Below are positions 2,515 to 55,742 of a stretch of 64,000 bases of DNA, in pieces. Source of the DNA: Trichoplax adhaerens (taxonomy: Eukaryota > Animalia > Placozoa). The DNA is taken from the NCBI RefSeq assembly GCF_000150275.1, contig NW_002060978.1, positions 248,001-312,000 of the forward strand, read 5' to 3'. The position numbers and the translations under genes are program-made. Position 1 is the first letter of the stretch. Each line of letters starts with the position of its first letter. A model generated the notes under the pieces. That model saw only the letters and a program-made list of their open reading frames with translations. It did not search any database and was not told the DNA's origin.

Positions 2515-5500
2515 CTATCGTCGACGGTGGGAGTTGTAGACAAGTGGAACGCAGTCAACACCCACTGCTGCTGAATAAAAGCGTTGTAGTAATTAAATTT
2601 AATTAATAAAGAACAAATAATATCTTGAATAATACGCCACCTATTAAAATAATGAATTGAATTTAAGGTAAAATGTGCACATGTATGATTGCTGATAGCG
2701 ATGACTGGCATATAATTGTACGCCATAAACTAAAGATATGACGGAAATATGCTGTAATTTTTAGGTCATTAATCTGTTAAGGAAAAGATAAAATTGAATT
2801 CAAATTAGACAATGATGTTAAAAATAGGCAACAGCTGACAATAAGAATGGAAGTTTTTGCATTATTATTATGATTGGAGATTCATAGGTCATGTTAGCAG
2901 AATGTATTTTCAAAGGGTAATCACGATTTTCAAATAAATAAAGAATAGAAGAAAATAGATCAATTACTGGCTCAGTGATCCATTCTATTCAAGAAATTAA
3001 TTTAATATAGCAACTGACGTTAAGGAGGAAATTGCTTTCTTGTTTCTTGTACTTTAACGTTGTGAAAATTAAACTAAATAGTTCCATCGATTATGATCGA
3101 TAATTACTTCAAGGGAAATAATATATTAATTTAGTCTAACGAACAATCTAAGCTGAAAATTAAATCTAATGTTGTCAATTCAATAAAATCAAAATCGATT
3201 GTATGCGGTCTATCATTTTCTCTTATCTAAAAATAAAATAATATAACACTTTCCCTTCATTCAATGAATTTTGCTGCATTTTTGTTATCTATTTATTGCT
3301 ACAGCTATTTATAAAATAATCATTTCAACTGATGAATAGCAATATCCAGGCAATAGATTAGAAAGATAATAGACAATAGATCGACCCTTACGTGATAGAT
3401 ATGTATGTTGAACTATTGCAGGTATTATTTTCAGTGTGAAAGTTATTAGGCTTCAGGTGTCATTTACGTTGAAAAGCAACGCTAACTTTCAATAATTTCG
3501 ATTGGAGGGGCTAAAGAATTTTAAATTATTCTTTACGGGATGATCAAAAAGAAACAAAGCGATAAAGTCCCTCTAGTCATTTAATTTCAATTGGCAAATG
3601 ATTTCCTGCGCTAATGTAAATCAATCTTATCAGCGGATAATTTTGGAAAACTTTCTTTTTAGTTCTCCGTAGATAAATTTTATCATCATCGGATGATAAC
3701 ATGGCTCTTGGCGTGCTAGGGTTGATTAATAATTTATAAATAACCCTATTTTTATATTATTTGTAAGGCGAGTGTGGATTTAATCAACAATTTGAATGCA
3801 TTCATCAGTATTCGTTAAAACTAAGTTAACTTCCAACAAGAGTTGAAGTAAATTGTAGACAATAGATTAATTATTATGTTTAATAGCGTAGTCAAATCAA
3901 AGTTAAAAAATCAAAGTATTGATAAGAATATTCTCTCGGATACTGACAATGACTCAATAGTATAGCAATATCGGCTGGACATATGTCTAATCAATCAGTT
4001 TTTTGCATATTACTTTAGCGAAGGCGATGATGGACAGATATTACTAAAAAGATTTTGAGTCGCCTACATTCGTTCGCTATTATGTTTATCGCAATCAATT
4101 AGTCAAGTAGAACAATTGCAATATTAATGTAATCTAATCCAAGTTAAAAAATTTCGCCCTGATATTGGTATTTATAGACGATGAGTATTGCATAAAAAGC
4201 GTACGAAAGTTTCATTTTTTATCGATTCCATTTGATTAATTTAATATACTCTCATCCGCCTCAATATTAATGAATACACGAGGAAGTTGTTTATTCTATA
4301 GTTGTTGATATAATTAGTTCCAATAAAACTTTTTCATTAATATCTACTCCAATTGAAAATCGCATTCCCTAATCATATTATAGGAATAGCGTCCTAGATT
4401 TCCTTATCTCTATCAGCCACTTTATCTTAATTGATTCTCATAACATATCAGTTTCCATATCCTAGTAATACTTGTTCTGTGATTGATAGGAGCATTAAGA
4501 TTATGCCAAGCTATGATTAACTATTGGAATTCTTATAATTTTCACAGGAGATACTTCAATATGTGCTACAATAAATGACAAATGAAGAGTCGCAACATTG
4601 TATTGATTGTAATTTTAACAAGATAACCATTAATTTACTGTTGAAAAGTTAAATGTCAAGATTTAATTTCTTAGAAATATGCATGCTATTCTGTAAATTG
4701 ATGTAACCATGATATATATGATTCATTTCGAAATTAATTTTGCAAGGCCTATAGTATCACTTTTTCTAGTTGTTTATTTTATAAAATCAATATTATTCAT
4801 AAGAAATAGTGGTGACTTTAACTCTTTACGGTAATGCATTTTATAAGTGTAGTAGTAAAATAAAGTAAAATATTGTGTAACGCAATTGATAAAAAAAACT
4901 TCGTTATAGAAAAATACGCCAATTTAGGGCGAGAAACAGTAATCTATCACTGTATCTTGTGCAAATTGAGTGTCTTATAGCACTGGTTATCTATTTTACC
5001 TAAATTATAAATCATAACCAAGTAATAACTTCCTGATGGGAATAGAATAGAAGTAAGATAGCTTCCTGTTATTAAAATATTTTCTCTATCAGGTATATTA
5101 GTTACCGTTAGCCATTTTACACGATCATTCAATGAAGTAGGATGTTTCTATCAATTAGCTCATCTTATTCTCCGTTAAAGTTATCTTTCATATCATTAGG
5201 TTACCTCCTGTTCATTGTATCTATCTTATGGAGCATTTTCTTGCTATTAATTTGAAAGAATTTATCGTCAGATACAAAATCCAAGCATTTATATCAACAA
5301 AATATAAATAAATTTTTTCAATAGGATATAATAACCATATAGACGTTGTTGACGAAAAATAGTGCTTATGTTGATTGAATTACGTGTCCGCTTTAGAGTC
5401 TTTTTTTACTTTAACCATGTATTAATGACGTAGTATCTAATATTAATCAAGGATAGTGTTAAAAAATTAATATATTAATATTATTTTTGTTGTTCTATTT

Positions 5501-10739: not shown

Positions 10740-12470
10740 TGGTTGATATCGATTTAAGAGATCTCAAAAAATGAGCAGATACTATCTGCCGAAAATACAC
10801 CCCTTTATCTGCTCAAAATTACAACACTTTATTAGATTTAGTTAGTATCTAGCGAATGCTCATAATCATGGTAAGAATACAGTAAATGATTGATTATCAC
10901 TATTATTTTAATATCTAATGGACATATGTCACAAACAAGCTTTGCAACAAGACAACGTAATATACGATTAATAAGTCAATTCCTTGAACCACGTATCAAG
11001 GAACGATATCTGCACTATCACAAACACTTTTGCTCTACTAGCAGACTACACAAAGACTTAAACGCCTCGTATTTTACGTTAAACACTAAGTTTGAGAATC
11101 TTCTTTATTTCACGATATACTGCATTTATATACTATTGCTCAATAGTTCATGAGTCATAGTTAATACAATTAACATTGGAATCATTTACTGAATTATATA
11201 ATAATTTTAGCTACTGCTCCCTTAATGCAGACAACAGTATTTACGAACATAGTCATGTAATGACTAATACAGAATAGTTAGATTACGATATGTCCTATCA
11301 CGGAGCATTTCCATGATAAGTTACAATCTACCATAAGTAAATTACAATCACAATGATTGGAACTGTAAGTAGATGATTTGCATTCCCTATTATAACTATT
11401 AATTTCAGTACGTGTATATGTGTCTCTGTCATAAAAAGTCAATGCTATATTGAAACACTGTATATCCGAATTAGAAGTTAACTAAATAAGGATAGGCTAA
11501 CAATATTATCCTAACATTGATATTTCTACTCTAATACAGTACATAACACTGTCACAACATATTAAATTTTTTGGTGACAGAAGGCATCGCTAGACATCGA
11601 TTTTAGTGCCAGATTGTTGTCAAAGGAAGTACAAAAGGCCGATCTTCCGTCTAATAGATTCGTTATATTTCGCATCTTTAAGACAAATTTTTGGTCATCC
11701 ACCGCGTGCAGTAACTATGTGCCTCTCGCGAATTCTAATTAGATATTACTTCATAATGGAACGAAAAGATTAGTCGTTCAGTAGATACCTCAAATGAAGC
11801 CCAGAGAATGCCTATTAATCGCCACTGTGAGACTACTTGATAGATAATTTTCAACCATAATAAGGTAATGACTAGTACTGCCTTGAAGATCCTAAATACA
11901 TTAGTTAGGCGATCTTTTTCGGGGCTTATATTGATTTAAGAGTTTTCAAAAAATGAACGGTTGCCATCAGCGTAAAAATGCTTTCCTTTATCAGCTCAAA
12001 TTTGAAATGTTTCATAAGCTTAAAGGTAGTATCGAACGAATATTTTTGATCAATGGTCAGAATACTCTAAACGAATGATTTCACTATCGCTTTAATGTCA
12101 AATGGATACGTTAAATTTTTCCTTGATAGAAGGCACTACTAAACATTATCGTTTTAGTGGTAGGTCATTTTTTCTGGTAAGTGAGAAAAGCTCATCTTCC
12201 GTATACAACATTACTTATGTTTTACACAATTTAGACACATCTTTGATCATCTTCCGGGTGAAGAGTAACTACAGTATATATCTCTCTTGACCTTGTAATT
12301 ATATATCACTTCATAATATAACGAAAAGATTAGTAGATCATTAGATATCTCAGACCAAGTGGAGAGGATACCTAGTTAATTGATCACCACTGTTAGACTG
12401 AAAGAGTGCCGACAGTAAAGCTATAACTAACACGGAATTGGAGATTCTAACTAGGTTACTTAAGCAACCT
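10740..12470. repeat. Old, diverged ~550-bp tandem duplication (unit 1 interrupted by solo LTR A1)
   Basis: Collinear matches, for example gatttaagagatctcaaaaaatgagc (~10751) vs gatttaagagttttcaaaaaatgaac (~11933), and acttcataatggaacgaaaagattagt (~11748) vs acttcataatataacgaaaagattagt (~12308). Boundaries are approximate. Confidence 0.7.
10927..11556 (-). mobile_element. Solo LTR, family A copy 1 (630 bp)
   Basis: Begins TGTCAC and ends GTCACA. Perfect 5-bp TSD ACATA (10922-10926 / 11557-11561). About 93% identical by eye to 47376-48004. Orientation is weakly inferred from minus-strand TATATAAA (11132-11125) and AATAAA (11109-11104). Confidence 0.85.
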
Positions 12471-18137: not shown

Positions 18138-19254
18138 CGGGAATTAAAATTTAAGACCGATATATCATGCATTTTCGGAAATAACTCGTAGGATAATAAA
18201 TATTTATCATATTAATTAACATCTTATTTCGTAGCTAACGAAGTTTATAAGAAATTAAAACTGGATTTAATCAATTTTAGCGAATTGAATTAACAAAATC
18301 AGTCAACGCTATGTTCTCAATAATCGAACGATATACATTTTTCTCTGACGATTTCGACAGCTGCTATACCAATCACTGTATGCAAAGTATACTGACAGAT
18401 ATAATATAAATATATCGGTTCTGTCATTTCAAAATAAAATCGAGTTATGCTTTCGGGTATGTAATGTTTGGACTGTATTTCTCGTCTATTAGAGGGTGGA
18501 TAAACTAATTAGAAAGTTTAAAGCCACGGAAACTTCAACCAATTTTTAAAAGCTAGATTAATACTCTTATAGAAATATTGCTGAATAAAAGCTCCCTTTA
18601 CGGCTAGAATTTTACTAATATTTGCTATGTCAAAGATTACGACTTGTAGATAGGCCGATGAAGTACTGTTAGCTGCAAGGTGCTTCGTTTTCAATTATAT
18701 TTACATCAAGTAATTAAATGGACATGAATGCAAACATTGTCACAAAACTAATACATACATAACAATCTGTTTAGCATAGAAAAGACTATTATTGATTATT
18801 TACAATTATTAAAAACAAAATTAACTTAATGTTACTCTCCTCAACTTTAACTATTATGAGTTAACTATTTTTCTATTATTTCGATTGATCTTCAACAATA
18901 TCACTATTCGAAAATTGAGATAATATCATTATCAAAAATATTAATCATTTACAATGAAAAGAATAAGTGTGATTCAATTACCTAAATAGTTTCTAATGAT
19001 CATTATTTTAGACAGTAGTATATGTTATTAGTTACAATGATATACAGTAATTATTTGAAAAAAGAGAAAAATAATTTAATGATCTTCATCTATTTGCCTT
19101 TATATAAATTCTAAAGCATTAAAGACTTGGCTAATGAAGCAATACTAATACAAAGATACTTAACTCGATTTCTATTGCTTCCTTCAGTTGCTATAATCGA
19201 CATAACCGAGAAATAGGCTGAAAACGATTGCCGTGGATCAGCAAAAGTATCATT

Positions 19255-20652
19255 ATGAGAAATCTTCATGGCCATGATGATGACGATAGCTATGCAGAGG
19301 GTGATTATTTTAACTGGACAACCAACCATACTTTACCTGAAACTTACGGACTACAAGAATATTTACAGACCATTAGCATAGGAATACTCTTTTTTATGTC
19401 ATTGATAGGCAATTCATTGGTTTTACGATACATTGTCAAGAAAAGGAAACTTCATACAGCAACATTTATTCTAATAGCAAACAACTGTGCAGTGGACTTG
19501 GCAATAACAATTTTCATTATGCCTATGTGCTTTATGGTTTCCATTTTACGTGATTGGCCTTTCAATTATGCAGCATGCCAATTTTTTGGATTTATAGATA
19601 TGACACTTTACACCGGTTCCTTAATGGCATTATCTGCAATTAGTGTTATACGCTATTTTGCAATAGTATGTATTCGAGATAAAAATTACCATCTGAAAAC
19701 CTCTAAGAAAACGGCCATAACTATGATATTTATATGCTGGTTCTATTCACTTGCATGGGGTAGTTTTCCATTAATGGGTTGGAATCATTACATCTTCTTT
19801 ATTGAGAAATTAATGTGTAATATGAATCATCGAGATCTAAATCATTATACGACCGCTAGTACGATATGCACAACATTAGTACCTTGCTTAGTGGTTATCT
19901 ATTGCTCATTCAGAATTATTCTAGCCATACGCCAACATAGCCATCATAATCATTTTCATCAAACGCAGCAGCCTCTACAACGTTCTCGTGTTGATCGCAA
20001 GGTAACTACGACTTTAATTATTGTCTTTATAGCTTACTGCTCTTGCACGATACCGCAGGTAGTTGTTGCTTCAATTTATAAATGGGATGAAGATGATACC
20101 ATGAATCAACGTATATCTTATAGAAACATCAAAATCATGGCTACTATTCTATATTTAAGTAATTGCACCGTTAATCCAATCATCTATGGCGTATGCAATA
20201 AAAATTTAAGGTCAGCCTTTCATTTTCGTGGTTATTTTGATCGTTTCTTTGACGTTGATGGCGTTTCACAAGGCCCAACAGCCATGGGTCCGACTTCTAT
20301 TCAAGTCAATGTTAATGAAAGTCCTACTACAAGATCTAGAAAATCACCCATTTCCCTCTCGAAAGTAAAATGCTTTGAAACTAACTCATCTAAGAATTGG
20401 CAAGCTAAAACATTGCAAAATCAATCTGGACTTAGACCAATGTCAGCTAAGTTGGTCAATAAAACATCGCCAATGGTGGCAAGAGCAAGATTATCCGATG
20501 TAAGTTTAGTTTCTATTGAATCGACCCAAACAGCCATAGAGCCAATATCGCCGTTAAAATCGAATCCCAACGTTAGGAATTGGAAGAATAATACGGGCAT
20601 TGCAGTAACACATCCAAGGATTAATCATTTAAAAAATCACGATATACACTAA
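19255..20652 (+). CDS. Class A (rhodopsin-like) GPCR, melatonin-receptor/opsin-related, long C-terminal tail (465 aa)
   Basis: Seven hydrophobic segments; GN in TM1; DL in TM2; IRY at the DRY position; PLMGWNHY..KLMC in ECL2; NPIIY in TM7; N-glycosylation sequons in the N-terminus. First in-frame ATG is at 19255 (the ORF track starts at an upstream TTG). Confidence 0.93.
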   Translation: MRNLHGHDDDDSYAEGDYFNWTTNHTLPETYGLQEYLQTISIGILFFMSLIGNSLVLRYIVKKRKLHTATFILIANNCAVDLAITIFIMPMCFMVSILRDWPFNYAACQFFGFIDMTLYTGSLMALSAISVIRYFAIVCIRDKNYHLKTSKKTAITMIFICWFYSLAWGSFPLMGWNHYIFFIEKLMCNMNHRDLNHYTTASTICTTLVPCLVVIYCSFRIILAIRQHSHHNHFHQTQQPLQRSRVDRKVTTTLIIVFIAYCSCTIPQVVVASIYKWDEDDTMNQRISYRNIKIMATILYLSNCTVNPIIYGVCNKNLRSAFHFRGYFDRFFDVDGVSQGPTAMGPTSIQVNVNESPTTRSRKSPISLSKVKCFETNSSKNWQAKTLQNQSGLRPMSAKLVNKTSPMVARARLSDVSLVSIESTQTAIEPISPLKSNPNVRNWKNNTGIAVTHPRINHLKNHDIH

Positions 20653-22762
20653 TATTAAATGGAAGGAGATTATGTGAAATGAATTCAATACGCTATCTTA
20701 TTATGAAATGTCTTGTGGCTGTTTTTGCTTCAATAAACTAACTACCGTACTTGCACAAACAATAGATAGTATAAGTATATTTTTATCAGAGCTACTATAG
20801 CAGCGGTAGTACATCTGCAATCTTTTAGACACTTGTGCAGTATTATCGCATTTAGCGAAAAGTGTTATTCAGTTCTGTAACAGCAAATCAACTTGACTAG
20901 GCAAATACCAATGTTTGATTTGTATTCCTTGCTACATCTAATCGTTATAATAATATTATTTATAATCATTCACGGTTAGCAATGTATTTTGCTAGAGAGA
21001 AAATTAGCTTATTAACTTATATAGTTGGTAACTTAACTATTTCAGAATATCAATGATAACACATTTATTTTAACTGTACTCACTTAATAAATTTTACTGG
21101 TATGTAACGATGTTGACCTCATCCTTAAAATTAAGATTAGCTTGATCCAATTTAAGATTAATAAAATTTCTTCTTATTGCACTCATTCAGCTAAGAAGAT
21201 TTAAATATTCGTTATACTGCAATTAATTATAATTATTAATAACTATTATAATGTGTATAAATAGAAGTAGTGGCATCAGGCACGCGCATCATTAGCAGTC
21301 CGGAAAATCCTTAACACACAATTCAGCTAATGGTTCATGTAGTATTGGTAATTAATTGGCAATACATATAATGTGATGAGATAGAATCATTCTTTGTAGA
21401 GGAATTACAATCGTACTTCCAGTTTTATTTTAGATATATTTACTAAGTCTACAATTACTTAATACGTTTAAATGAGCGGATTTCATGTTTAATCAAGCCT
21501 AAAAGCATTTGTGCAAATAGCTTATAATGTTAGGATGAAGACATACAGTAACAAAAAAATTTTACAATCATACCCAAATACGAATATCGTTCAAATTGTA
21601 GACTAAACCATAGACTAAATTACTTTTCGTATTGCCTGTATTTTATATAGCCATTATGAATACATGGAGCTTTCTTTAGTTTACCGGAAGATTGGCTGCT
21701 GTAATATCACAATTAGTGAGTAACAATAAAAAATTGATTCCATAGCTATACCAGAAACTTATAATGGCTATTTAAATTCCCGTTTTTAAGGCAGTTCAAT
21801 GATCGCTTAATCACTGATTTGTGACTTAATACTCAGAGAGGGAGTAAGGTTAGTTGTACGTAACTTTTCAATATTTCATCAGCTATTTTTTAAATATGGC
21901 ACATAACTACAGGTATATATTTTAAAATTATTAATGAATTAACGAATAACAATGGAAATTTAACCAATAAATCAATAGCATCATATCTTTAGAGCGAGAT
22001 TAGTTAATGCGGCTTAAAGCACCTGAAATCCATCAGATAGCAAAGGTTAATTAGTAAATTAAGGTATGCTTGTCGTTATGATTTTTTGTAATACGAGTAA
22101 TATATAAATGGTATTGATAAAGAAGCAAAAATATTTCCGTTTTAGAGACTGTTTGAGTTATATACATCAGATACATCATAGTATGCCTTGTAAATCTAGA
22201 AACACCTCTATTATACTCTAAACCCATAATACTTGCGTAAGGTTATATTTTTACTAATCAATGACTTAATTTTAATTATATTGAAATAAGTAATAATTTA
22301 TAAAAATGTAATAAACTTCGATTGCTATAGTAGGTATAACATTTTGAAGACCAGGAAAGTTTGTTTGGCTTGCTTTTAAAAATCTGGATGAATTTTTGTC
22401 AGGGATAATACGTTTCTTGTATTTATTACGGTCAGGGCAGATGTCAACTGTTCAGTCTACTATATAATATTCTGTTGAGGTATCAGTAGCGATAATTCTC
22501 TATTTAGCTCAATTCTGTTATAGTTATAATGTAGGCAATAAAGTTTTATTGTACCTATTAATAATTAGAGAAGAGACCCAAACATTATTTCTGTTTCTAT
22601 GTTTACATCATTACACAGCAGGTTTTTTTATCACCAGGCAGAAGGTCATTGTACGCTCTTTGTTAGGCCATGATATTTTTGACGTGTGATAATAACTTTT
22701 ATTCTCTTGGTTCATTTTGATAGAATATCATGCTTTTACTTGATTCTTGGATTGCACGGCAT

Positions 22763-23128
22763 TGTAGAATGTAATGCCTTGAGTTTAGTAATTGAGTAAA
22801 ATTCTTTAAGTATAGAATTACTAATATGCACTACCGTAGGCTATAATACTTTCGTAGTTCAATGCGATTAGTTGCTCGTGCTCAGGCAAAATATGGCAAT
22901 TCAATGCCCGTACGTAACGTGTGGAAACGTGATAATATTACTACTATTACGAAATAGGTCATGCCCTAGGACTTTTAGGCGTATGCAACGAGTAGATCGA
23001 GAGTTCTTCTTGTTCATAGTTTGTTGTAAATACCGTTACGGTTGGTTTTTATTGTAATAAAGCTTAATTCGGGTTTTAAATCCAGTTCGACTGATTTATT
23101 GTGGACCCTTGAAAATCAACTTACTACA
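22763..23128 (+). mobile_element. LTR-like element, family C (366 bp), followed by a tRNA-Ser primer-binding site; internal region absent
   Basis: TGTAG...CTACA inverted termini and AATAAA at 23056-23061. It is followed after 3 nt by TGG plus tRNA-complementary sequence, the canonical LTR-PBS junction. The left boundary is inferred from the terminal inverted repeat only; no clean TSD was found. Confidence 0.65.
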
Positions 23129-23131
23129 ATT

Positions 23132-23179
23132 TGGCGCTGCAAGTAGGGTTCGAGCCTAAGCGGGAGAATCCCATTGGAT
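23132..23179 (-). pseudogene. 3'-half copy of mature tRNA-Ser including CCA (extended PBS)
   Basis: Minus strand reads ATCCAATGGGATTCTCCCGCTTAGGCTCGAACCCTACTTGCAGCG-CCA. This corresponds to A38, the anticodon-stem 3' strand TCCAA, a long variable arm GGGA-TTC-TCCC, the T-arm (two mismatches), the acceptor 3' strand, G73 and CCA. It closely matches the architecture of animal tRNA-Ser(CGA/UGA). Confidence 0.8.
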
Positions 23180-24122
23180 ATGCTCTGCTAAAGATTGCAT
23201 CTATTTTAGTTAAAATTGTACGAAAGATGAATAAATTTAAAATCTAGTGGTTTAAATGAATGACAGATTTGTTTCTAGTCGATGATTTTCCCGCTATTTC
23301 CTTTAATAAAAGTTAGCTTCCCCAAATTGATTAACAAAGGAGAATTCGATAATTGATATTTGGCTAAATCAATATTTCTTGGCTATTAAATGATTACCTA
23401 GAATTTAATAGTCACATTATGGAAATCTAAATTGACGGTAAATATTGTGGCTGATATTAGTAATTGTTGTTATAGAGTATTTCTTCATTTGTTGTAAGCT
23501 TGCCGACGAAGAAAGTATTTCACAAAATTATAATAACGATGAATATGAAGATAATTTTTCTTTCTTAATCTTCAGTTCGTATTCAACGATAGTGAAATAG
23601 TTTAAACAATAATTATCATAATAGCCAAAAATATTTATCTAACAGAGACAAATGTCTATAAAGTTTATTATTCCATATGACAAATTAGGTGTTTCAATTG
23701 ATTGCCTTTGCTATTTCTAGCTAAAATCGTATGAATACTTATATTGACGTAGATAGAACGTCGAAGGTATTGTAGCTCAATTAATTGATCCGCTTGCTAC
23801 ATCATTAAGTAAATAGACTAAAATTTGATTGTTGAGATACAAAGGAGTTTAATTAAAGTAAAATTATTCTTGCTTCTACATCAATTAAAGATTCGTCAAT
23901 ATTAGTCATTTAAATATTACATTACCTTAAATAAAAATTTTTTTGTTAACTAAACATTCGCATAGAGATATTACTATAGCACAGTTAACTGGTACTGATA
24001 ATTTTACAAGAATGATTTACCTAAAAATTTATTGCGAAGTATAGATTTGGATACAATAATTTGATGAGTTACAAAATATAACGCTTTTAACTATATCTTA
24101 ACAAAACGTATCATAGTGGTTT

Positions 24123-25145
24123 TCATAGCATTAAATGTGAATTAGCACGTTTACTACGAAATCGAACCGACAAAGGAATGACTGTACTTGAATGACGGTC
24201 ACTTCGACATCTACAACAGATATTTGTCAATAATTTTTGTTGAACGATACGTCGTAAGTAGGAATTCATTGCTCCATATATAATGGAATTCCAAGCGCTA
24301 TTACTGAAATAGAGTATGGTTGCGATTGCCTGTATTCTGTAGTATAAATGTAAACTTCCAGAATATTCATTAAATCGGACTACAGTTGCCATTAATAAGT
24401 TCGGACCTATACATAAGAAATAGACGATAGCGATTATGCCCATCATAATAGTCACTCGTCGCTCTAATCGATTGCTTCGGGTTAAATTAATGCTTCGGTT
24501 GGTAAAATTTTGCCACATATACACAATTATTCTTATCGTGCAATAAAACAAAATGGTTGACGGTAGAAGAGTGCAAAATATTGTCGCTAGTAGCGGATAT
24601 TGGCCTTCACGGTGATTCATATTGCACATAAGTTTACCTAATACAAATGAATATCGATTCCATCCATATAACGGTGGACTTGCCCAAACTAGTGAATAAA
24701 TCCAAACTATTGCAATCATATATTTAGCTCTTTTGACAGACATTTTCTTGGCAAAATCTTGATCCAAGGCTCTAACGATGGCATAATACCGGTTAATACT
24801 AATCATCGCCAATGATGATAGTGATGCTGTATAGGATACCATTTCTAAAAAGCCCAAAATCTGACAAGTGATGCTACTAAAGGGCCACATACCAACTTGA
24901 ACAACAATAAAACATATTGGTATAATAAAAATTGTGATTAGTAAATCACAAAATGCTAGATTTGCTATTAAGATATTAGTTGATGTATGCAACTTCTTTT
25001 CCCAATAAGTCATGAAAACGACAGGAAAATTTCCGATTAATGCGATAGTAAAGATAACTATTAATATCACAGAGATGATAATTGCCTCGGTGCCTTGTGG
25101 CCATTTATCATTGGATGTAGAGTTGGTCGATGCGTTAAGATCCAT
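24123..25145 (-). CDS. Class A GPCR, melatonin-receptor/opsin-related paralog (340 aa)
   Basis: 7TM; LHTSTNILIANLAFCD, SINRYYAI, WASPPLYGWNRY..KLMC, NSIIYG. The ATG is directly preceded by a splice-acceptor-like ttttttttAAG. Confidence 0.94.
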   Translation of the reverse strand: MDLNASTNSTSNDKWPQGTEAIIISVILIVIFTIALIGNFPVVFMTYWEKKLHTSTNILIANLAFCDLLITIFIIPICFIVVQVGMWPFSSITCQILGFLEMVSYTASLSSLAMISINRYYAIVRALDQDFAKKMSVKRAKYMIAIVWIYSLVWASPPLYGWNRYSFVLGKLMCNMNHREGQYPLLATIFCTLLPSTILFYCTIRIIVYMWQNFTNRSINLTRSNRLERRVTIMMGIIAIVYFLCIGPNLLMATVVRFNEYSGSLHLYYRIQAIATILYFSNSAWNSIIYGAMNSYLRRIVQQKLLTNICCRCRSDRHSSTVIPLSVRFRSKRANSHLML

Positions 25146-27563: not shown

Positions 27564-28604
27564 TTATTCGCTTGTATTAAAGACATATTGGCTAAAACTT
27601 TTTCTCACCTTCTTCGTAGCAGTAATAGGATTGACTGAGTGATGCCTCCATGCTGCTAGACAACGTGGCCAGTGATATTGTTGTTTAACAGCTCGACGTA
27701 AATATGGATTCATTGCGCCGTTGATAATAGGATTGACGGCGCTGTTCATAAAATAGACGATAGTAGCGATGGTTTGAAAATCGTTGTATTTAGACAAATC
27801 TTCACTATTACTTGAATCGAAAGCATAGAGTGAACCAGCTACAAAATTGGGAGCAATGCATAATACATAAGCTAATAAAATTAGGCCAATCATGGATGTT
27901 ACTCGGCGTTCAATTCGTTGTCGATTGGATGTTGCAATACTTGAATTTTTAGCATTCTTCCATAGCGTAATAACTACTCTACCTGAGCAATATAAGATAG
28001 TAAAGGTTGGAAGAACAGTACAAAATAGAGTTACTACGGTCACATAGAGACTTGGATCACGTTGCTGCATATTACACATTAACTTGGAAAAGTAAAAGAC
28101 ATAACGATTCCATCCAAATAATGGTGGCGCAGCCCATATTGCTGAATACATCCAAACACCGATAGCCATGATTTTAGCTCTTTTGATAGACATCTTGGCA
28201 ACAAAATTAGGATCCATGGCACAGACAATGGCATAATAACGATTAATACTTAAAATTGCTAGAGAGCATAGGGCGTTATTGTAAAGTATCATGTCTAAAA
28301 ATCCACCTATAATACAAAATGTACAACTAAATGGCCATACCAAAGTTAAAGAAATGGTGAAACATATTGGCATGACAATAATTGTAATAAAGAGATCATT
28401 TAAAGCAACATTGGCGATTAAAATATTAGTTGAGGTATGTAATTTTTTAATGGAAATTGTAAAAAAGATGATGGCTAAATTGCCAGTTAATGCTATAGTA
28501 AAAATGATGCCGATAGCAATGCTAGGCCATATTCTATACGACGGAGATAGAGGAATTGTAAAATTGTTGAAGCAATGATTAGCATGGATAGCACCAGCGC
28601 TCAT
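27564..28604 (-). CDS. Class A GPCR, melatonin-receptor/opsin-related paralog (346 aa)
   Basis: 7TM and clearly paralogous to 24123-25145 (KKLHTSTNILIAN, SINRYYAI, KMS.KRAK, PPL.GWNRY, KLMCNM, ERRVT). TM7 reads NPIIN. A probable 5'UTR intron acceptor ttttttccattaaAG is at 28637-28636. Confidence 0.94.
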   Translation of the reverse strand: MSAGAIHANHCFNNFTIPLSPSYRIWPSIAIGIIFTIALTGNLAIIFFTISIKKLHTSTNILIANVALNDLFITIIVMPICFTISLTLVWPFSCTFCIIGGFLDMILYNNALCSLAILSINRYYAIVCAMDPNFVAKMSIKRAKIMAIGVWMYSAIWAAPPLFGWNRYVFYFSKLMCNMQQRDPSLYVTVVTLFCTVLPTFTILYCSGRVVITLWKNAKNSSIATSNRQRIERRVTSMIGLILLAYVLCIAPNFVAGSLYAFDSSNSEDLSKYNDFQTIATIVYFMNSAVNPIINGAMNPYLRRAVKQQYHWPRCLAAWRHHSVNPITATKKVRKSFSQYVFNTSE

Positions 28605-30061: not shown

Positions 30062-31317
30062 TACTGTACAGTGTACAGTGTACAATGTACAGTCAATGAT
30101 ACGGTGACAGTGAGCATACTGTAGCGTACTGTACAGTGTACAGTACAGTACAGTACAGTACTGTAGACCACGAGCGATACAAATACCGTACTCTACTGTA
30201 CTGTTGTACTGTACTGTACTGTACTGTACACTGTACCATTGTGAAATACAGTACTGTACCCTTCTGAAATACAGTACAGTACAGTACTGTACTGTAATGC
30301 GTACAGTGTACAGTACTGTATGCAATGACAGTACAGTACTAGACAGTATGGAGTCATTGTAGTGTACAGTACTGTACAGTGTACTGTCTGTATGTCATGA
30401 AAAGAAAACCGGTTTTCTATGAGTGCTACAGTACAGTATACTGTACACATTGCACTGTAGCTGCAGCATCGACAGTTACAGTATACTGTACTGTACTGTA
30501 CAGTACTGTCTACTAGTGCTGCCTTAGTATACGAAAGTGTTTACAGTATAATACTGTATATGAGTGGCACTTTCATACCAAAACGACGTTTTTTTAATAG
30601 TAAACGAAAGTGTTGACAGTATATAGAGTGGCCCGTTCATACCAAAATGACGTTTTTGACTAGTAAACGAGCTGCTGTACACTGAAGTCGCCTTTTTATA
30701 CGAAAGCGCTTTATACAGTATAACGTAAACGTAAGTATACACTACAAAGGCAGCAGACGTGTACACTGCGCAGTGACAACACACGGTATAGCGTCCTAAT
30801 GCAAGGAACAGTACAGTACTGTACAGTATTGTAACTGTATCAACTACAATGTACAGTACAGTACATTACAATACATAGTACAGTACCGTAGTACAGTACT
30901 GTACTGTACACTGAGTGTACAGTATTAGTGTACAGTGTACAGTACTTCAGTGTACTGGACTACTGTAAACTGTACACTGTACTGTACTGTACACGGCAGC
31001 CTGCAGTGCTCCAAACAATCATGTTGTGTATACAGTAGATTGCATTCAGCATGGGATCAGGGCTAAAGGCACGTGCCCCTAAAGGTGCAGTACATAGTTC
31101 ATACTCCGTTGACCATATGACCCATTGACCATACAGTGTCAGTGAATAGACAAGCGGTTTCGGAGCGTCAAACCAGTCCTGTACGATCCTAAGGCGTACT
31201 GCAATTTGATTGGTTGTGAGTCAACAACCGGTCCAACGCTCACAAACTTTCCTAGTAACCGTTGTCTCTTGGACTACAGTCGAGTGTATCGTCGTACTGT
31301 ACTGTACAGTACTGTCT
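30062..31317. repeat. TACAG/CTGTA pentamer-based array in mixed orientation, with an embedded 63-73-bp tandem repeat
   Basis: Dense runs such as cagtacagtacagtacagtactgta and gtactgtactgtactgtacactgtac. Includes a perfect 31-bp inverted repeat (30131-30161 / 30206-30236) and tandem units starting acgaaagtgtt at 30531 and 30604, with a partial copy at 30700. Confidence 0.9.
31110..31259. promoter_or_regulatory. Candidate TATA-less promoter of the mitochondrial-protein gene
   Basis: Triple TGACC(A/C) at 8-bp period (31110-31131), inverted CCAAT (31209-31213), TGAGTCA (31217-31223), X-box-like CTTTCCTAGTAAC (31247-31259). A YY1-like ATATGGCGGC overlaps the start codon further downstream. Confidence 0.4.
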
Positions 31318-33184: not shown

Positions 33185-35027
33185 TTTGTCAGGGGATAAT
33201 GATGGTACTTGTTGATGGTATTATTCTTACATCTGCTATCATTCTATTACTGTAACATAATCATTTGCGTTGTATCATTAATGTGCATTTTATACGGTTA
33301 AGTTATAATCGATGCAAAGTGATAGATTTTACATGCTATATAATTTCAGTATACGTAATCAACTTACCGTTCAAGTACAGTGATTATTACTTCTAGCTCA
33401 GGCATATATTCTAGTTATGCAAACGGTGGTGTTTACACGTTGAACAGTGCTTGATTCAGATATTATACGCCACCCAACTTTTATTTTAAAATAGCAATTG
33501 ATCAAAATGTAAAACTAATAAAATTGTCCAGCGTAGCTGTGCTCGTAAGGCTAATAAACCAATCACTTTTCGGATATTGCAGAGTATGTATTATTGTGTG
33601 ACTACGTTTCCTTTCTGGAATCCAACTCGATTGATTCTCAATCATGTGTTACACTGTTAATCACAGGCGGTATTTGTACCTTGGGTCGACAGTAAGATCT
33701 CCATTTCTATACTTAATTTATTAGCGATATAATGAATCGATTCATTGCTATTTGGCACTTGTACGCTATAGTAACTTCCTTGTATACCGTAAGTATAATT
33801 TAAACTGGGAATTTGGTAAACGTATGTAACGTGCAATTTTACATTTTCTTGAGAGATTTTCAAAGATGTAGTAGCAAGACATGAAGTGTACCTAAGGTCG
33901 ATGGAATTTGTTCCATGTCTTTGTTCATAGCGATTGCTTATCCTTAAAGTTTAGTGTATCACTTACAAGAAGCATTACAACTACTTCAAGCAGATAAGAA
34001 AAGCTATGGTTACTTTACTTGCTTACCCGCAAAGACCTGCTCATGCTATGCACTTGAACAACGAACGAATCCATTGATCATATCACCCCAAAATCATCGT
34101 GGAATTGGAACTCCTAATCAATATTACGATTTACTTTGGTCATCATTGCGTATTAGGAGAGATTGAAAAGATTACTAGTCGAGAAAATATTGTTTGACCG
34201 AATCGACTGTACAATTTGGTGCACTATCATTGACGTTGGATTATAAATAAATATAATCGCAATAAATCAGCCAAAGACGACACAAGGTTTCATGAAATGG
34301 TAGAATAAAATAAGTTTGTTTCCGATTCCCATTAACCTTGACTTTTAGTCGTATTTTAGTCGAGTTGTTGCCATCCACAACAACGTCAGGGTACCCTTGT
34401 CTACTAATGAGACAGTATTTTACATCAACATTATACAGTATATGCTTACAAGGTTAAATGACTTTAATCACTCGTTTCTCCCTTTCTAGTCTATTTCATC
34501 TACGTAATATAAACAGTCGACCATGCAGTACGTCAAACACATACTGCATACTGTACATTTAGAAGCAATGTACAATTACAGTAAGTAGAGATGGCCAGAT
34601 CATTTCCTTTTTAGTACAGTTATTTCCTTTGCGTTGTTGAGTAATGCTCTGAAATTGGAATAGACTTGGATCAAATTTGCCTTAATCGCCGTCGGAGTGA
34701 TGATGATTTTTCACTTATCTTATGAACCTGCAGAAACGTACAGCCAATTCTCATACGGTACTCTATACGTTGAAGGTAATTTTATTCTAGGGGCATATCG
34801 TTAATTTTCCCTTTATTTTTTTACCTCCATGGGCTAACCCACGCCCATGATTTGAAGCTGGACGCAGTGCATTCCGTTCCAGACTGAACTAGTCCATGAC
34901 AGTACAGTCATGCGTGCACTGTATCCGTCTAAGTTTTCTACAGAAACGGCAATAACGCAATGACCTGTCATGCGTACTTTGATTTAAGGATAGACTTTAT
35001 ACCGGATGAGAAATTAAAACATGTTTA

Positions 35028-35225
35028 GTACTGTACAGTACAGTAAAATGTCTAGAACTAGAGTACTGTGTACAGTAGCTAAAGGTCTACTGTACAGTAC
35101 TGTACACTGTAGTGTCGTACTGTACATACTGTAGAACCCGTAATTTATACTGTAGTTGGGATCTTGGCTTGTGCTTCATGCAATCTTATTGTTGATTGTT
35201 TAATAGCGTACTGTACAGTGTACAC
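35028..35225. repeat. TACAG/CTGTA array upstream of SREBP
   Basis: gtactgtacagtacagt, tactgtacagtactgtacactgtag, gtactgtacagtgtacac. Confidence 0.8.
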
Positions 35226-35273
35226 TTTACGCCTTGGCACTTTAAATTGGAGAGACTAGAAACTAGGGTCTAC

Positions 35274-35314
35274 TGTATGCATGAAACTTGAAGACTTCAA
35301 GTTTCATGCATACA
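35274..35314. repeat. Perfect 41-bp palindrome (20-bp arms, 1-nt spacer)
   Basis: TGTATGCATGAAACTTGAAG-A-CTTCAAGTTTCATGCATACA. Confidence 0.95.
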
Positions 35315-35411
35315 AGTTGAAGTAACATTACTTTAGTCAGTATGGCGCTACAGTGTCTCTATCAGACAGTGAGTGACTTGGAGTCAAACTTGACGAATGT
35401 GTTTCAGCTGA

Positions 35412-35458
35412 ACCACGTGACCGAGTGGTCTGACTTTTCCTAACTTCTCTGATTGGCT
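35412..35458. promoter_or_regulatory. E-box + NF-Y module in the SREBP promoter
   Basis: ACCACGTGAC (CACGTG at 35414-35419) and CTGATTGGCT (inverted CCAAT at 35452-35456), about 310-350 bp upstream of the ATG. Further ATTGG motifs lie near 35588 and 35726. Confidence 0.5.
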
Positions 35459-35763
35459 GGATGTTTCTACTGACAGTCGAGTCTCTTACAAGCACTTACA
35501 ATGGAAAGTTACCGTCACAGTACAAGTTACATCATCGCACGATCTGTGTTTATTATGCGCTCTTGACAGGCGATGGATTGCGACTTGATTGGATACAGTA
35601 CATTATACTGTACAAAAAGTTCAACATCTGATCATTTGCATTCAGTTTAACAGTAATTGCAATCATTGACAGGATTTACGAATAGTAGTGATATTATTTC
35701 AGAATCTCCACCATTGAATAAAGCGATTGGTTTGGTAAGAGAACGCTACCGAACGTTTCCAAT

Positions 35764-38700
35764 ATGGAGAATAGTTTAATAGAAGATTGGAATATGAGAA
35801 GAGAGCTTCCAGATGCGGGATTCCAAATGGAAACCGACAACTCTTATATGATTACTCCTGAACAGGATAAGGGTGTATTAGACGACATTGATGGTATGTT
35901 GGTATTCTTGATCGTATGATTTTTCTCCTATTTATCATTTTACGGAACCTTCCTAGCAAAGTGAAATGAAATGTTATTTCTCTTCATCTTTATGGATGAA
36001 ATACTTTGGAGAAAAGATAGCTTAGTATTGCAAGTCTTTCGCCTTGATCAGTTTATGGACGCTTTGAATTATTCTAGAATAAAAACTGCATACTTTCCTT
36101 GTATTTCTTCAATCCACTCTTACTCACTGCATACTTTACTTGTACTTCTTCTATCTACTCTGACTTATTTTGGTAGTCTAAAAAAAGTTCTTCCCTACAG
36201 TGTACAGTACTGTACTGCCCGTTTGTCCTATTCATACTACTGTACAGTACAGTACCATATTTTCTACTGAGAGCGTATCCATGTTTCAGTCAGTACACTA
36301 ACTACAGTACAATATAGCGTAGGCTTGGACCTCTGCTCTGTACAGTGTACTGTAGTATATGGTCCAGTCACGGACTACAGTATCAATTAAATGTCTTCAG
36401 CTGAACCTTCTCAGGCGTCCACTTTCAATACCGTAGATTGTTGTCAACTGGCGATTGTTGATGTGATTGTTTACTTCGTCAGTGATAACCGATGTTGCCG
36501 AAATTCAGCAGCTAAAACTTGGACCATGACTAATCGCATCAGTTCATCAGTTCTTGCTGTTTTGGCTACACTCTGCAAAGTAAATGAGTAGGAGAGTTAT
36601 GTAGAGGATCGTTATTGAGTACAGTGTGTCAATACTTGTGGATTACAACGATGCCGACAGTTGTAGTTAGTATAGCAAGCGATAGCGTAATAAGTATTTT
36701 GCGCCATTCTACCACTGTATAGAATAGATCATGAGGAGTAATACTGTACAGTCTAGTCATTTCTTGATGGGTTATGTGTGCTAGCATACTACAGATGGAG
36801 TAAAACTGTACAACTGTTCAGTATCATCGGCCACCAGAACCAAGACTAGTTGAGGTAGTTAAGAGGAGATCAAAATTGACTACAGCTTTTCAGCAGTAAG
36901 TCTCTCGTTACAAGTAACAACCATGCATGCAATTCCAATGAGTTCAGATAGGATCGATGGAGCCAATGACGAATAGTAGATTGGGCCTCCTCTCGCTCTT
37001 ACAACTTGACTTAAAATACCATGACAGAAGAAGGAGAAATTTTTCTGTGATGCAAATACATTCGATTAAATGATGCTGGATAGCAAGCAATATCTTGTCC
37101 ATTGATACATACATATACGTGTGTATTTCCAGATCTATTCAATATGGACTATTCAGGAGAAGTCGGAGAATTCGATATTTCAGACTACCTGCAATCGGAT
37201 ATGCCCGTCAGACAATTTGATGACACTTTAGCAAAACTTGAATGCGATCCGTATTCATCGTTGATTAGCAATAATTCTGCTAGCATGGATGAAATCAAGC
37301 CAGTCAACGATAATAAGAAAGCGGCTATCATAAGTCAGTTAAGAGAACAGGAACAATTGAAGCAGAAACAACTTGAACAGCAAAGGCAGCTAGACGAATT
37401 GAGGCAACAACAGAAATTATTACAAGATCAACTTCAAAAAAGTCAAACAGGTGTTGGTACCCTGCCGAGTGTTGTAACACTAAGCATGCAAGCACCAATA
37501 CTTCCTAATGCGACATCCGCTTATACACATAGTACGCCGATAGTGGGAACGACTCAACAACCACAGGTTAGAATTAAAAGTAATGGTTATACCTTGATTA
37601 ATTTCGACCCTTGTTTTTATGTCGTAACTGATTCTTAAATTAGATATCTACATCTTAATCTTCTTAGCTTGAGAATAAATTTGTTTCGGTTTGCAAAATA
37701 ATCGTTATCGCTTACTGTTACAGTTCTATTCATATTGTGCATTCGATATCTACGTGTATACTCAAGATAGAAATATTAGGAAGGACTACTATTTTAAATA
37801 ACGTTACTCCATTCAGTTTTTCTACTGCACTAGTTGGAAGGCATTTATTTGCTTTCTGTACTCCAACTGAAATTATCAACTACTATTTTTCTAATATCGT
37901 GCGTGACACATCAAAGGTTTTACATACTTTTGACTAAATATCATGGCCGTCTTCGGTGTAGGTTGTACTATACCACCATAACCAACAGTAGATGTATTTA
38001 TGAATTTGCTTACCAAAACGTACTGCTTGATGGTGTATTGATTAAAATTATTATCGATTGATAGATTGTGTTGGCTCCGCAAGTCAAGCCTGAGGTAGCT
38101 TCTACCAAGCCTTCGGCTGTCAGCGTTGCATTCACCTCCGGTTCTGTAAGTTATACCAATCTTGTAAACACAAGTGGCGTACCGACAGTTATCGGAAGAT
38201 CAAATGGAAATTTGGATAGTGAAAAAGTTCCCATCAACAGGATTTTAAATAGCAGTTCTACACCAGTTCAGAACGTCAGCAAAAGTGAGCGAAGATCGGC
38301 TCACAACGCTATTGAACGACGCTACCGTACTAGTATCAATGATCGTATCATAGAACTGAAAGATTTGCTTGTTGGTCCAGACACTAAGGTTTGCTGCAAA
38401 GATCATCAGAAATTGGCAGTAATACTGATAGTAAAATCATGTATTTCTTCTATCTAATTATAGAATTTTTAATTTGTATTAATAAATGGCGTAATTGTCT
38501 TGTATGTTTTTACTTTTGAAACCGTTAATAGATGAACAAGGCTGGTATTTTACGAAAAGCTATAGAATACATTCGATATATACAAGACGTTAACAAAAGA
38601 CTTGAAAAAGAAAATATAGCACTTAAAGAAGGTATAGTCAGTCACACTAATGTATTTTTAGTAGGAATTTTATAATGTCTCCTCTAGGCTGCTCATGAAC

Positions 38701-47375: not shown

Positions 47376-48004
47376 TGTCATAAAACAGCTTTACAACAAG
47401 ATAACGTAATATATGGTCAATAAGTCAATTCCTTGAACAACGTATCAAGGAACGATATCTGCACTATCACAAACACTTTTGCTCTACTAGCAGACTACAC
47501 AAAGACTTAAACGCCTCGTATTTTACGTTAAGCACTAAGTTGGAAATCCGCTTTATTACACGATATACTGCATTTATATACTCTTCTTTAATAGTTCATG
47601 AGTCATAGTTAATACAATTAACATTGGAATTATTTACTGAATTAGGTATTAATTTTAGCTACTGCTCCCTTTATGCAGACAACAGTATTTACGAACATAG
47701 ACATGTAATGACTAATACAGAATAGTTAGATTACGATATGTCCTATCACGGAGCATTTCCATGATAATTTACGATCTACCATAAGTAAATTACAATCATA
47801 ATGATTGGAACTGTAAGTAGATGATTTGGATTCCCTATTATATCTATTAATTTCAGTATGTGTATAAGTGTCACTGTCATAAAAAGTCAGTGCTATATTA
47901 AAACACAGCATATCCAAATTAGAAGTTAACTAAATAAGGATGGGCTAAAAGAATTATCCTAACATAGATATTTCTACTGTAATACAGTACATAACACTGT
48001 CACA
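47376..48004 (-). mobile_element. Solo LTR, family A copy 2 (629 bp)
   Basis: TGTCAT...GTCACA with a perfect 5-bp TSD GCCTC (47371-47375 / 48005-48009). Same orientation as copy A1. Confidence 0.87.
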
Positions 48005-48118: not shown

Positions 48119-48670
48119 TGTAATGTAACTAGTATTGTGACTGTAGACTATTAGCCATGTTTAGTATAATGTACGGTAGATATTTATCTTAAGAGATATT
48201 TGGTAGCTATAACTATAGACTGTAGTGGTATAGACTCTACGATAGAGTACAGATGACTATATACAGTAAGGTGTTGAGCTACTAATAAGGCTATAGGTAA
48301 AAAATAGAACTGTAAATTATATATTAGGATATGGTTAATTCATTGTACTTTGGCTGGTGCGAATAATGTCTACGTAAGTACTGTAGTCGTATCCATATCA
48401 GATTAATGATGGTCCGCTATAAAATAGTGTTACTAAGAATAATTTAACTATTTGTAAAATAAGGTAAAAGATTGTCATTCGGATTGTAGCTGGGAATGCT
48501 ACGATAAATATAAAAGCATGCAACTCTAGCTTATTCCGTTAGTTCGTTGTAGAAGTCTTTAGTAGTAGTATTTGGCTAGAGTAGAGCTGTATGTAGTTAA
48601 TCTTAGTATAAGATTCAATAAAGCTCTTATTTTTCTAAAATTTGGAATTTCGTGATTGGTATATATCACA
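48119..48670 (+). mobile_element. Solo LTR, family B copy 1 (552 bp)
   Basis: TGTAATG...TATCACA. TSD ATAAG/ACAAG (4/5 match). TATAAAAG at 48509-48516 and AATAAA at 48617-48622. About 96-97% identical by eye to 55185-55742. Confidence 0.85.
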
Positions 48671-55184: not shown

Positions 55185-55742
55185 TGTAATGTAACTTAGT
55201 ATTGTGATTGTAGACTATTAGCCATGTTTAGTATAATGTACTGTAAATACTTATCCTAAGAGATATTTGGTAGCTATAACTATAGACTGTAGTGGTATAG
55301 ACTCTATGCTAGAGTACAGATGACTATATACAGTAAGGTGTTGAGCTACTAATAAGGCTATAGGTAAAAAATAGAACTGTAAATTATATATTAGGATATG
55401 GTTAATTCATTGTACTTTGGCTGGTGCGAATAATGTCTACGTAAGTACTGTAGTCGTATCCATATCAGATTAATGATGGTCCGCTGTAAAATAGTGTTAC
55501 TAAGAATAATTTAACTATTTGTAAAATAAGGTAAAAGATTGTCATGCGGATTGTAGCTGCGAATGCTACGAAAAATATAAAAGCATGCAACTCTAGATTA
55601 TTCCGTTAGTTCGCTGTAAAAGTCTTTAGTAGTAGTATTCGGCTAGAGTAGAGCTGTATGTAGTTAATCTTAGTATAAGATTCAATAAAGCTCTTATTTT
55701 TCTAAAATTTGGAATTTCGTTATCTGTATACAGTATATCACA
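55185..55742 (+). mobile_element. Solo LTR, family B copy 2 (558 bp)
   Basis: TGTAATG...TATCACA with a perfect 5-bp TSD CACTC (55180-55184 / 55743-55747). TATAAAAG at 55576-55583 and AATAAA at 55684-55689. Confidence 0.88.

Follow-up and report, generated by a model that had tools for sequence, protein, structure and literature searches.

The locus at positions 22763 to 23179 of the analyzed window (64,000 nt of the Trichoplax adhaerens genome; C1379:248001-312000) is probably a fossil of an aberrant reverse-transcription end, which was left by an extinct Ty3/gypsy-like element that was primed by tRNA-Ser(UGA) and became joined to the chromosome without integrase. The locus consists of a long terminal repeat (LTR), an unprocessed three-nucleotide spacer, and a 48-nt antisense copy of the 3' part of a mature tRNA that stops at A38. 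At an intact junction between a 5' LTR and its primer site, tRNA complementarity extends for no more than about 18 nt and is followed by a leader and gag, whereas here 48 nt of complementarity are followed by single-copy, non-coding DNA.

The segment from 22770 to 23128 (forward strand) is a genuine multicopy LTR of an LTR retrotransposon. When the genome was searched with this sequence (G000; 105.6 Mb in 1,414 contigs), at least 47 matches with 76 to 91% identity were found, which excludes the case, raised in the initial annotation of this DNA, that the segment is single-copy and has no LTR relatives. Nearly all of the matches listed end at query position 366, which corresponds to window position 23128, where the LTR-like segment ends in ...CTTACTACA; among the matches listed, none runs on into the tRNA-like part. 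The 30 copies that we oriented start with TGTAGTGCC, aligned to window position 22770, and end with CTACA, and the termini TGTAG...CTACA (TG...CA, with a short terminal inverted repeat) are common to the copies of the family. An automated check of 23 near-complete copies revealed perfect 5-bp target site duplications (TSDs) at zero offset in seven (GTATT, GTACT, ATCTG, ATATA, ATTAT, GGATA, and CGTCA) and a match at 4 of 5 positions in four more. Such duplications are the hallmark of insertion by integrase and subsequent reduction to solo LTRs. The window copy covers U3, R, and U5 at full length and contains a TATA-like motif (near 22842-22848) and an AATAAA (23056-23061), both on the forward strand and in the expected order.

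The LTR had been annotated as starting at 22763. It is indeed a full-length LTR, but in the register of the family it starts at 22770, where TGTAATGCC in the window corresponds to TGTAGTGCC in the family, and the seven nucleotides before it (TGTAGAA, 22763-22769, forward strand) are extra, since other copies start at the equivalent of 22770. These nucleotides may derive from an imperfectly duplicated LTR start or from what remained of the end of a polypurine tract; they have only GAA in common with the polypurine tracts of the two elements described below.

Genome searches found no full-length element of the window LTR family. Internal sequence was seen in just one copy, a 5'-truncated element on the minus strand (L006/L090; C1408:3817661-3818300), which has kept its 3' LTR and about 250 nt of the 3' internal part. 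A polypurine tract, CTGGGGTGAA, abuts its 3' LTR and ends in ..GGGGTGAA, and the tail of an RNase H (18 amino acids; ..NGNADAWSRL) lies about 190 nt upstream of the LTR. A second element (L073/L080), whose LTR family is related but not identical to that of the window, is 1.5 kb long and internally deleted, with LTRs that are 99% identical, the TSD GAAAT, and the polypurine tract AGAAGGGGCGAA. The RNase H fragment of this element matches PF17917 at 1e-20, and the RNase H tail of the truncated copy is 72% identical to it (E of 1e-4, a value obtained in a tiny database). Through these two elements, the window LTR family may be tied to a pol of the Ty3/gypsy type. The LTR of this element and the window LTR both start with TGTAG, contain a ATTGTAATAAAG block, and end with TTAyTACA followed by (A)TT and a primer site.

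Beyond the LTR, the sequence is that of a tRNA in antisense. As the initial annotation had read it, the LTR ends in CTACA at 23128, a spacer of 3 nt follows (ATT, 23129-23131, forward strand; the equivalent junction in related families reads ACA-TT-TGGCGC), and TGG begins at 23132. The 48 nt from 23132 to 23179 are the antisense of positions 38 to 76 of a type II tRNA, tRNA-Ser(UGA). To obtain the tRNA gene set, we searched the whole genome with Rfam model RF00005, which yielded 50 tRNA genes, and the genes with a long arm were typed by ARAGORN; the reverse complement of 23129-23215 was then aligned to the four tRNA-Ser genes of the genome. The best match is tRNA-Ser(UGA), which is encoded by a single gene (L047:1501-1582), with identity at 40 of 45 positions over 38 to 73. 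The matching segment spans A38, the 3' strand of the anticodon stem, a 14-nt variable arm, the T arm, the 3' strand of the acceptor stem, and G73. The primer had been annotated as tRNA-Ser, which stands, and the isoacceptor is specifically UGA. In the alignment to the four genes, the window past A38 has no similarity to tRNA positions 1 to 37, so the match stops at A38 as claimed and does not continue past position 37.

The first 18 nt of the copy (23132-23149, forward strand) are the equivalent of a canonical primer-binding site, being the antisense of positions 59 to 76, CCA included, with one mismatch. The other 30 nt (23150-23179, forward strand) are a read-through extension, the antisense of positions 38 to 58 with four mismatches to the present gene, and cover the T loop from A58, the T stem, the variable arm, the 3' strand of the anticodon stem, and A38; A58 itself is faithfully copied, as the T at 23150. 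The five differences from the gene, four of them transitions, lie in the variable loop (two) and at positions 49, 54, and 67, and could be decay, errors of the reverse transcriptase, or the trace of an extinct isodecoder. The tRNA copy has diverged by 11%, close to the 9 to 24% by which the LTR differs from its relatives, which indicates a similar age for both.

The window reads CCA where the tRNA-Ser(UGA) gene has AGG, and the template was therefore a mature tRNA, as had been proposed from the CCA. Gene conversion from the tRNA gene was also considered and dismissed, since CCA is missing from the gene and the homology extends for just 17 nt. The piece is neither a tRNA gene nor a tRNA-derived SINE by its composition, as it lacks a 5' half, an A box, and a cloverleaf. 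ARAGORN detected no tRNA gene in the window, and within 22600-23400 Rfam reported no tRNA even at E of ≤10.

The DNA on both sides of the locus (21300-22769 and 23180-24600) is single-copy. Downstream of the tRNA copy, 23180-24600 contains no retroelement-derived sequence and no remnant of a 3' LTR, and no open reading frame of more than 51 amino acids occurs before the next gene, which bears out the earlier observation that no gag or pol follows. No combination of ends at the locus gives a 5-bp TSD. The single-copy flanks and the lack of a 5-bp duplication indicate that element-derived DNA ends exactly where the tRNA copy ends. With no TSD and with the ATT spacer retained, the locus does not have the form of an integrase-mediated insertion. 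Positions 22748 and 23174 carry imperfect copies of a 16-nt sequence, TTGGAT(A)TGCxCxGC, which resembled a long TSD; this reading was rejected after local alignment was compared with shuffles and random window pairs (p of ~0.6). A search with the protein of a neighboring G protein-coupled receptor (GPCR) gene found no orthologous or allelic locus.

Those neighbors are members of a cluster of intronless rhodopsin-family GPCR genes (7tm_1, E of 1e-38 to 1e-43) at window positions 19228-20652 (forward strand), 24123-25145 (reverse strand), and 27564-28604 (reverse strand). The latter two are diverged tandem paralogues, 71 to 74% alike in DNA and spaced by 3,450 nt. Elsewhere, an open reading frame for a GPCR (7tm_1) fragment (L081, 2722-3084; C1402:1470721-1471083) lies less than 6 kb from a decayed tRNA-Ser-primed element, and the same locus carries a separate pair of 630-nt direct repeats spaced by 3.5 kb (745-1376 and 4245-4879).

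It could be argued that the tRNA piece is independent of the LTR, either as a truncated retropseudogene of mature tRNA-Ser or as a LINE-type template-switch chimera that came to lie beside a solo LTR. CCA-bearing tRNA retropseudogenes occur in animals, and the window LTR lacks a TSD, which indicates that its right flank was disturbed. However, the piece begins 3 nt past the CA end of the LTR, it is in the orientation and register of a primer site, and it derives from the same tRNA that primes related families, which would be an extremely unlikely coincidence. The locus also lacks the marks of LINE-mediated insertion, namely poly(A) and a TSD of 7 to 20 bp, as there is no A tract at either end and no significant duplication. 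Furthermore, non-LTR retrotransposons are almost absent from the Trichoplax genome (PMC2871265). Independent origin of the two parts is thus very improbable.

The related elements reveal what a canonical site for this primer looks like. A 17-nt pattern of the tRNA-Ser(UGA) primer site, with up to two mismatches, occurs at six places in the genome: the window, one non-LTR location (L077), two near-identical copies (L072 and L073), L075, and L076. At the last four, an LTR ending in ..TTACA or ..TCACA is followed by TT and then by exactly 18 nt, TGGCGCTGCGAGTAGGGT (1 to 2 substitutions allowed), past which the sequence no longer follows the tRNA and continues into a gag-like open reading frame. 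Thus, at four junctions in three related LTR families, the tRNA-Ser(UGA) site is 18 nt long and ends just before A58. The window and these three families have the junction ACA-(A)TT-TGGCGC in common, which identifies the tRNA at the window locus as the priming tRNA and not a chance neighbor. The extension past position 58 has no second copy: a 26-nt pattern (tRNA positions 47 to 69, up to three mismatches) matches just the tRNA gene and the window, and a BLAST search of the genome with 23126-23200 returned no match besides itself. A primer site of any kind is absent after the other copies of the window LTR family.

These observations bear on the alternative that the locus is the remnant 5' LTR of a complete element, or of a sub-lineage, with a real 48-nt primer site, everything downstream of which was later deleted. 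The order of LTR, spacer, and TGG is exactly that of a junction between a 5' LTR and a primer site, and the members of the family are mostly so decayed that the absence of other examples is weak evidence. On the other hand, neither the 48 nt nor any stretch past position 58 has another copy in the genome, all four junctions of the three related families have 18 nt, the deletion must have begun exactly at the last tRNA-derived base, and the downstream DNA holds no remnant of a 3' LTR and no TSD. We therefore consider a true 48-nt site unlikely. The initial annotation had left the choice between a one-off read-through product and a family with a natively half-tRNA-length site, and had suggested that either would be an unusual priming system for Placozoa. 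The real LTR, the CCA, the uniqueness of the copy, the lack of retroelement sequence after it, and the lack of a TSD all favor the one-off product; the native half-length site and the unusual priming system find no counterpart in the other copies or in the related families. Judged by their junction sequences, the related placozoan elements use tRNA-Ser(UGA) canonically, stopping before A58, and the window locus alone is aberrant.

A one-off product of reverse transcription could have arisen through the following steps, an order of events and a joining pathway that we reconstruct from this one locus. The minus-strand DNA of the LTR element would bear the primer tRNA at its 5' end, and plus-strand synthesis from the polypurine tract would copy U3, R, and U5 and then the first 18 nt of the still-attached mature tRNA. 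Without a halt before A58, reverse transcriptase would run 30 nt further, to A38. The resulting 3' tail of 30 non-complementary nucleotides would not support normal plus-strand transfer, as described for HIV-1 (PMC8599865), and a DNA end composed of the LTR, the ATT spacer, and the 48-nt tRNA copy would be no substrate for integrase, so that host end joining would attach the aberrant end to chromosomal DNA. Joining of such an end by host repair would explain why ATT was retained, why there is no TSD, and why internal sequence is lacking. Two routes are conceivable. The captured molecule may have been a strong-stop duplex of LTR length, or the insertion may have involved full-length DNA whose right end was unprocessed and which LTR-LTR recombination later reduced to a solo LTR, the form of most copies of the family. 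Counting against this explanation, a later deletion may have ended by chance at the tRNA copy. An assembly or cloning chimera has nothing specific in its favor and is scarcely credible: the tRNA copy and the LTR are each about 10% diverged from their sources, as in old genomic DNA, and the junction is in the biological register of a primer site.

The position of the stop invites a reading in terms of tRNA modification. Whether TRMT6/TRMT61A is present had been raised as a check in the initial annotation, and a complete GCD14/TRM61 open reading frame in the genome (306 bits) codes for the catalytic subunit of the m1A58 methyltransferase. Exons of the IPPT family are present as well, and tRNA-Ser(UGA) has the A36-A37-A38 context for isopentenylation. 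Together, these genes and this context make m1A58 and i6A37 plausible in this tRNA, and it is plausible, judging from sequence, that the stop records i6A37. The end lies one base 3' of position 37, as a block at 37 predicts. Still, we lean slightly toward an endpoint whose cause was different from a block at a modified A37, such as run-off at the end of a 3' tRNA half that had been cut in the anticodon loop, trimming by an exonuclease, or microhomology at joining. Nothing in the sequence separates a modification block from a tRNA half or from trimming, and endpoints at 38, 33, 27, 55, or 1 could all have been explained afterwards, so that by a rough count the coincidence is about 1 in 8. Moreover, our literature search met no text on i6A as a strong block to reverse transcriptase and no direct statement that i6A37 acts as one. 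From one locus, the chance that the modification reading of the A38 stop is right is no more than about one in three. More broadly, we regard it as a tentative idea that the fossil records the state of one ancient primer tRNA, which would have lacked m1A58 (A58 being copied) and would have halted synthesis before A37 through i6A37 or a derivative, or would have ended there as the 5' end of a 3' half. If this is true, and if fossils with the same endpoints recur, tRNA copies beside LTR ends would form a readable "palaeo-epitranscriptomic" record across animal genomes.

The window also contains repeats of other kinds. Two solo LTRs of a second family (10927-11556 and 47376-48004; ~630 nt, TGTCA...GTCACA) are 93 to 94% alike and have the perfect 5-bp TSDs ACATA and GCCTC; this family has ~529 first-look candidates genome-wide, at 92 to 94% identity. 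Two solo LTRs of a third family (48119-48670 and 55185-55742; ~555 nt, TGTAATG...TATCACA) are 97% alike, have the TSDs ATAAG/ACAAG and CACTC/CACTC, and are not two ends of one element; this family has ~489 candidates genome-wide, at 95 to 98% identity, and a junction on contig C271 (L076) with an 18-nt tRNA-Ser(UGA) primer site. The published census of Trichoplax describes very few, inactive gypsy-like elements, no solo-LTR families, and an LTR content of 0.04% (PMC2871265). Judged by the counts for the second and third families, the LTR content looks far above that figure. Pieces of the window LTR family also occur in rearranged form. A composite repeat occurs twice, with common flanks (L025, C1397:1167704-1167949; L029, C1399:1547159-1547403) and joins an LTR end of the third family (..tatatcaca), CCCC, and the window-family LTR from position 123 to its end, and a half LTR adjoins a tandem array of partial pieces (L030, C1397:200422-200990) in which positions 289-367 occur three times and 129-215 once. 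Dense ACAGT/GTACT pentanucleotide repeats occupy 30100-31300 and 35000-36250 of the window, a microsatellite motif that is unusually abundant in Trichoplax (PMC2871265).

Taken alone, this one locus is a curiosity without evident function, and its value would come through a systematic survey. It suggests that read-through products, which are rare and familiar from laboratory retrovirology, can reach fixation in the germ line, and that such fossils preserve the identity of the primer, the use of mature, CCA-bearing tRNA, and possibly tRNA modification. Placozoan Ty3/gypsy-like elements, for their part, combine tRNA-Ser(UGA) with a textbook 18-nt primer site. A literature search found no paper describing a fossil of this type, which is weak evidence, as older retrovirology is thinly covered. 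The phenomenon is known in kind, from aberrant retroviral and retrotransposon ends with primer-derived sequence, and a germline-fixed, 48-nt placozoan example is less usual. Similar ends are known from avian and HIV vectors that carry RNase H or U5 mutations and integrate aberrantly.

Compared with canonical strong-stop DNA and the 18-nt primer site of retroviruses and LTR retrotransposons, the window locus shares the CA end of the LTR, the spacer of 2 to 3 nt, and a TGG... sequence complementary to the 3' end of a mature tRNA, but its copy is 48 nt long, reaches A38, and leads into no internal sequence of an element. tRNA-derived SINEs and retropseudogenes likewise consist of tRNA-derived sequence, and retropseudogenes can carry CCA; unlike them, the window piece has no 5' half, A box, or cloverleaf, and it lies antisense to the direction of LTR transcription, in the register of a primer site. 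In yeast, work by Teng et al. in 1996, Moore and Haber in 1996, and Yu and Gabriel in 1999 reportedly demonstrated the capture of Ty1 cDNA at chromosomal double-strand breaks. Such capture resembles what we propose for the window locus in that joining to the chromosome is independent of integrase and leaves no TSD, whereas it belongs to an experimental system and not to a fossil. In cells deficient in TRMT6, the stops on tRNA-Lys3 at A58 and U54 (m1A58/m5Um54) are lost, and plus-strand synthesis of HIV-1 proceeds further into the tRNA and yields DNA that is unfit for transfer (PMC8599865). As we propose for the window locus, synthesis past 58 or 54 precludes normal strand transfer; however, the HIV-1 case was seen in vitro and in cell culture, and the window case, which involves another tRNA and another element, is read from a fossil. 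Finally, HIV-1 2-LTR circle junctions contain DNA ends that keep sequence from the primer site or tRNA and from the polypurine tract (PMC5618025, PMC9198661). As at the window locus, their U5 end was left unprocessed and primer-derived sequence follows it, possibly with extra nucleotides at the U3 end, and such ends are unfit for integrase and are joined by host enzymes. HIV-1 2-LTR circles are laboratory products that are somatic and mostly unintegrated and that usually carry a primer copy of 18 nt or less, whereas the window locus is a germline-fixed, chromosomal copy with 48 nt of tRNA sequence in an early-branching animal.
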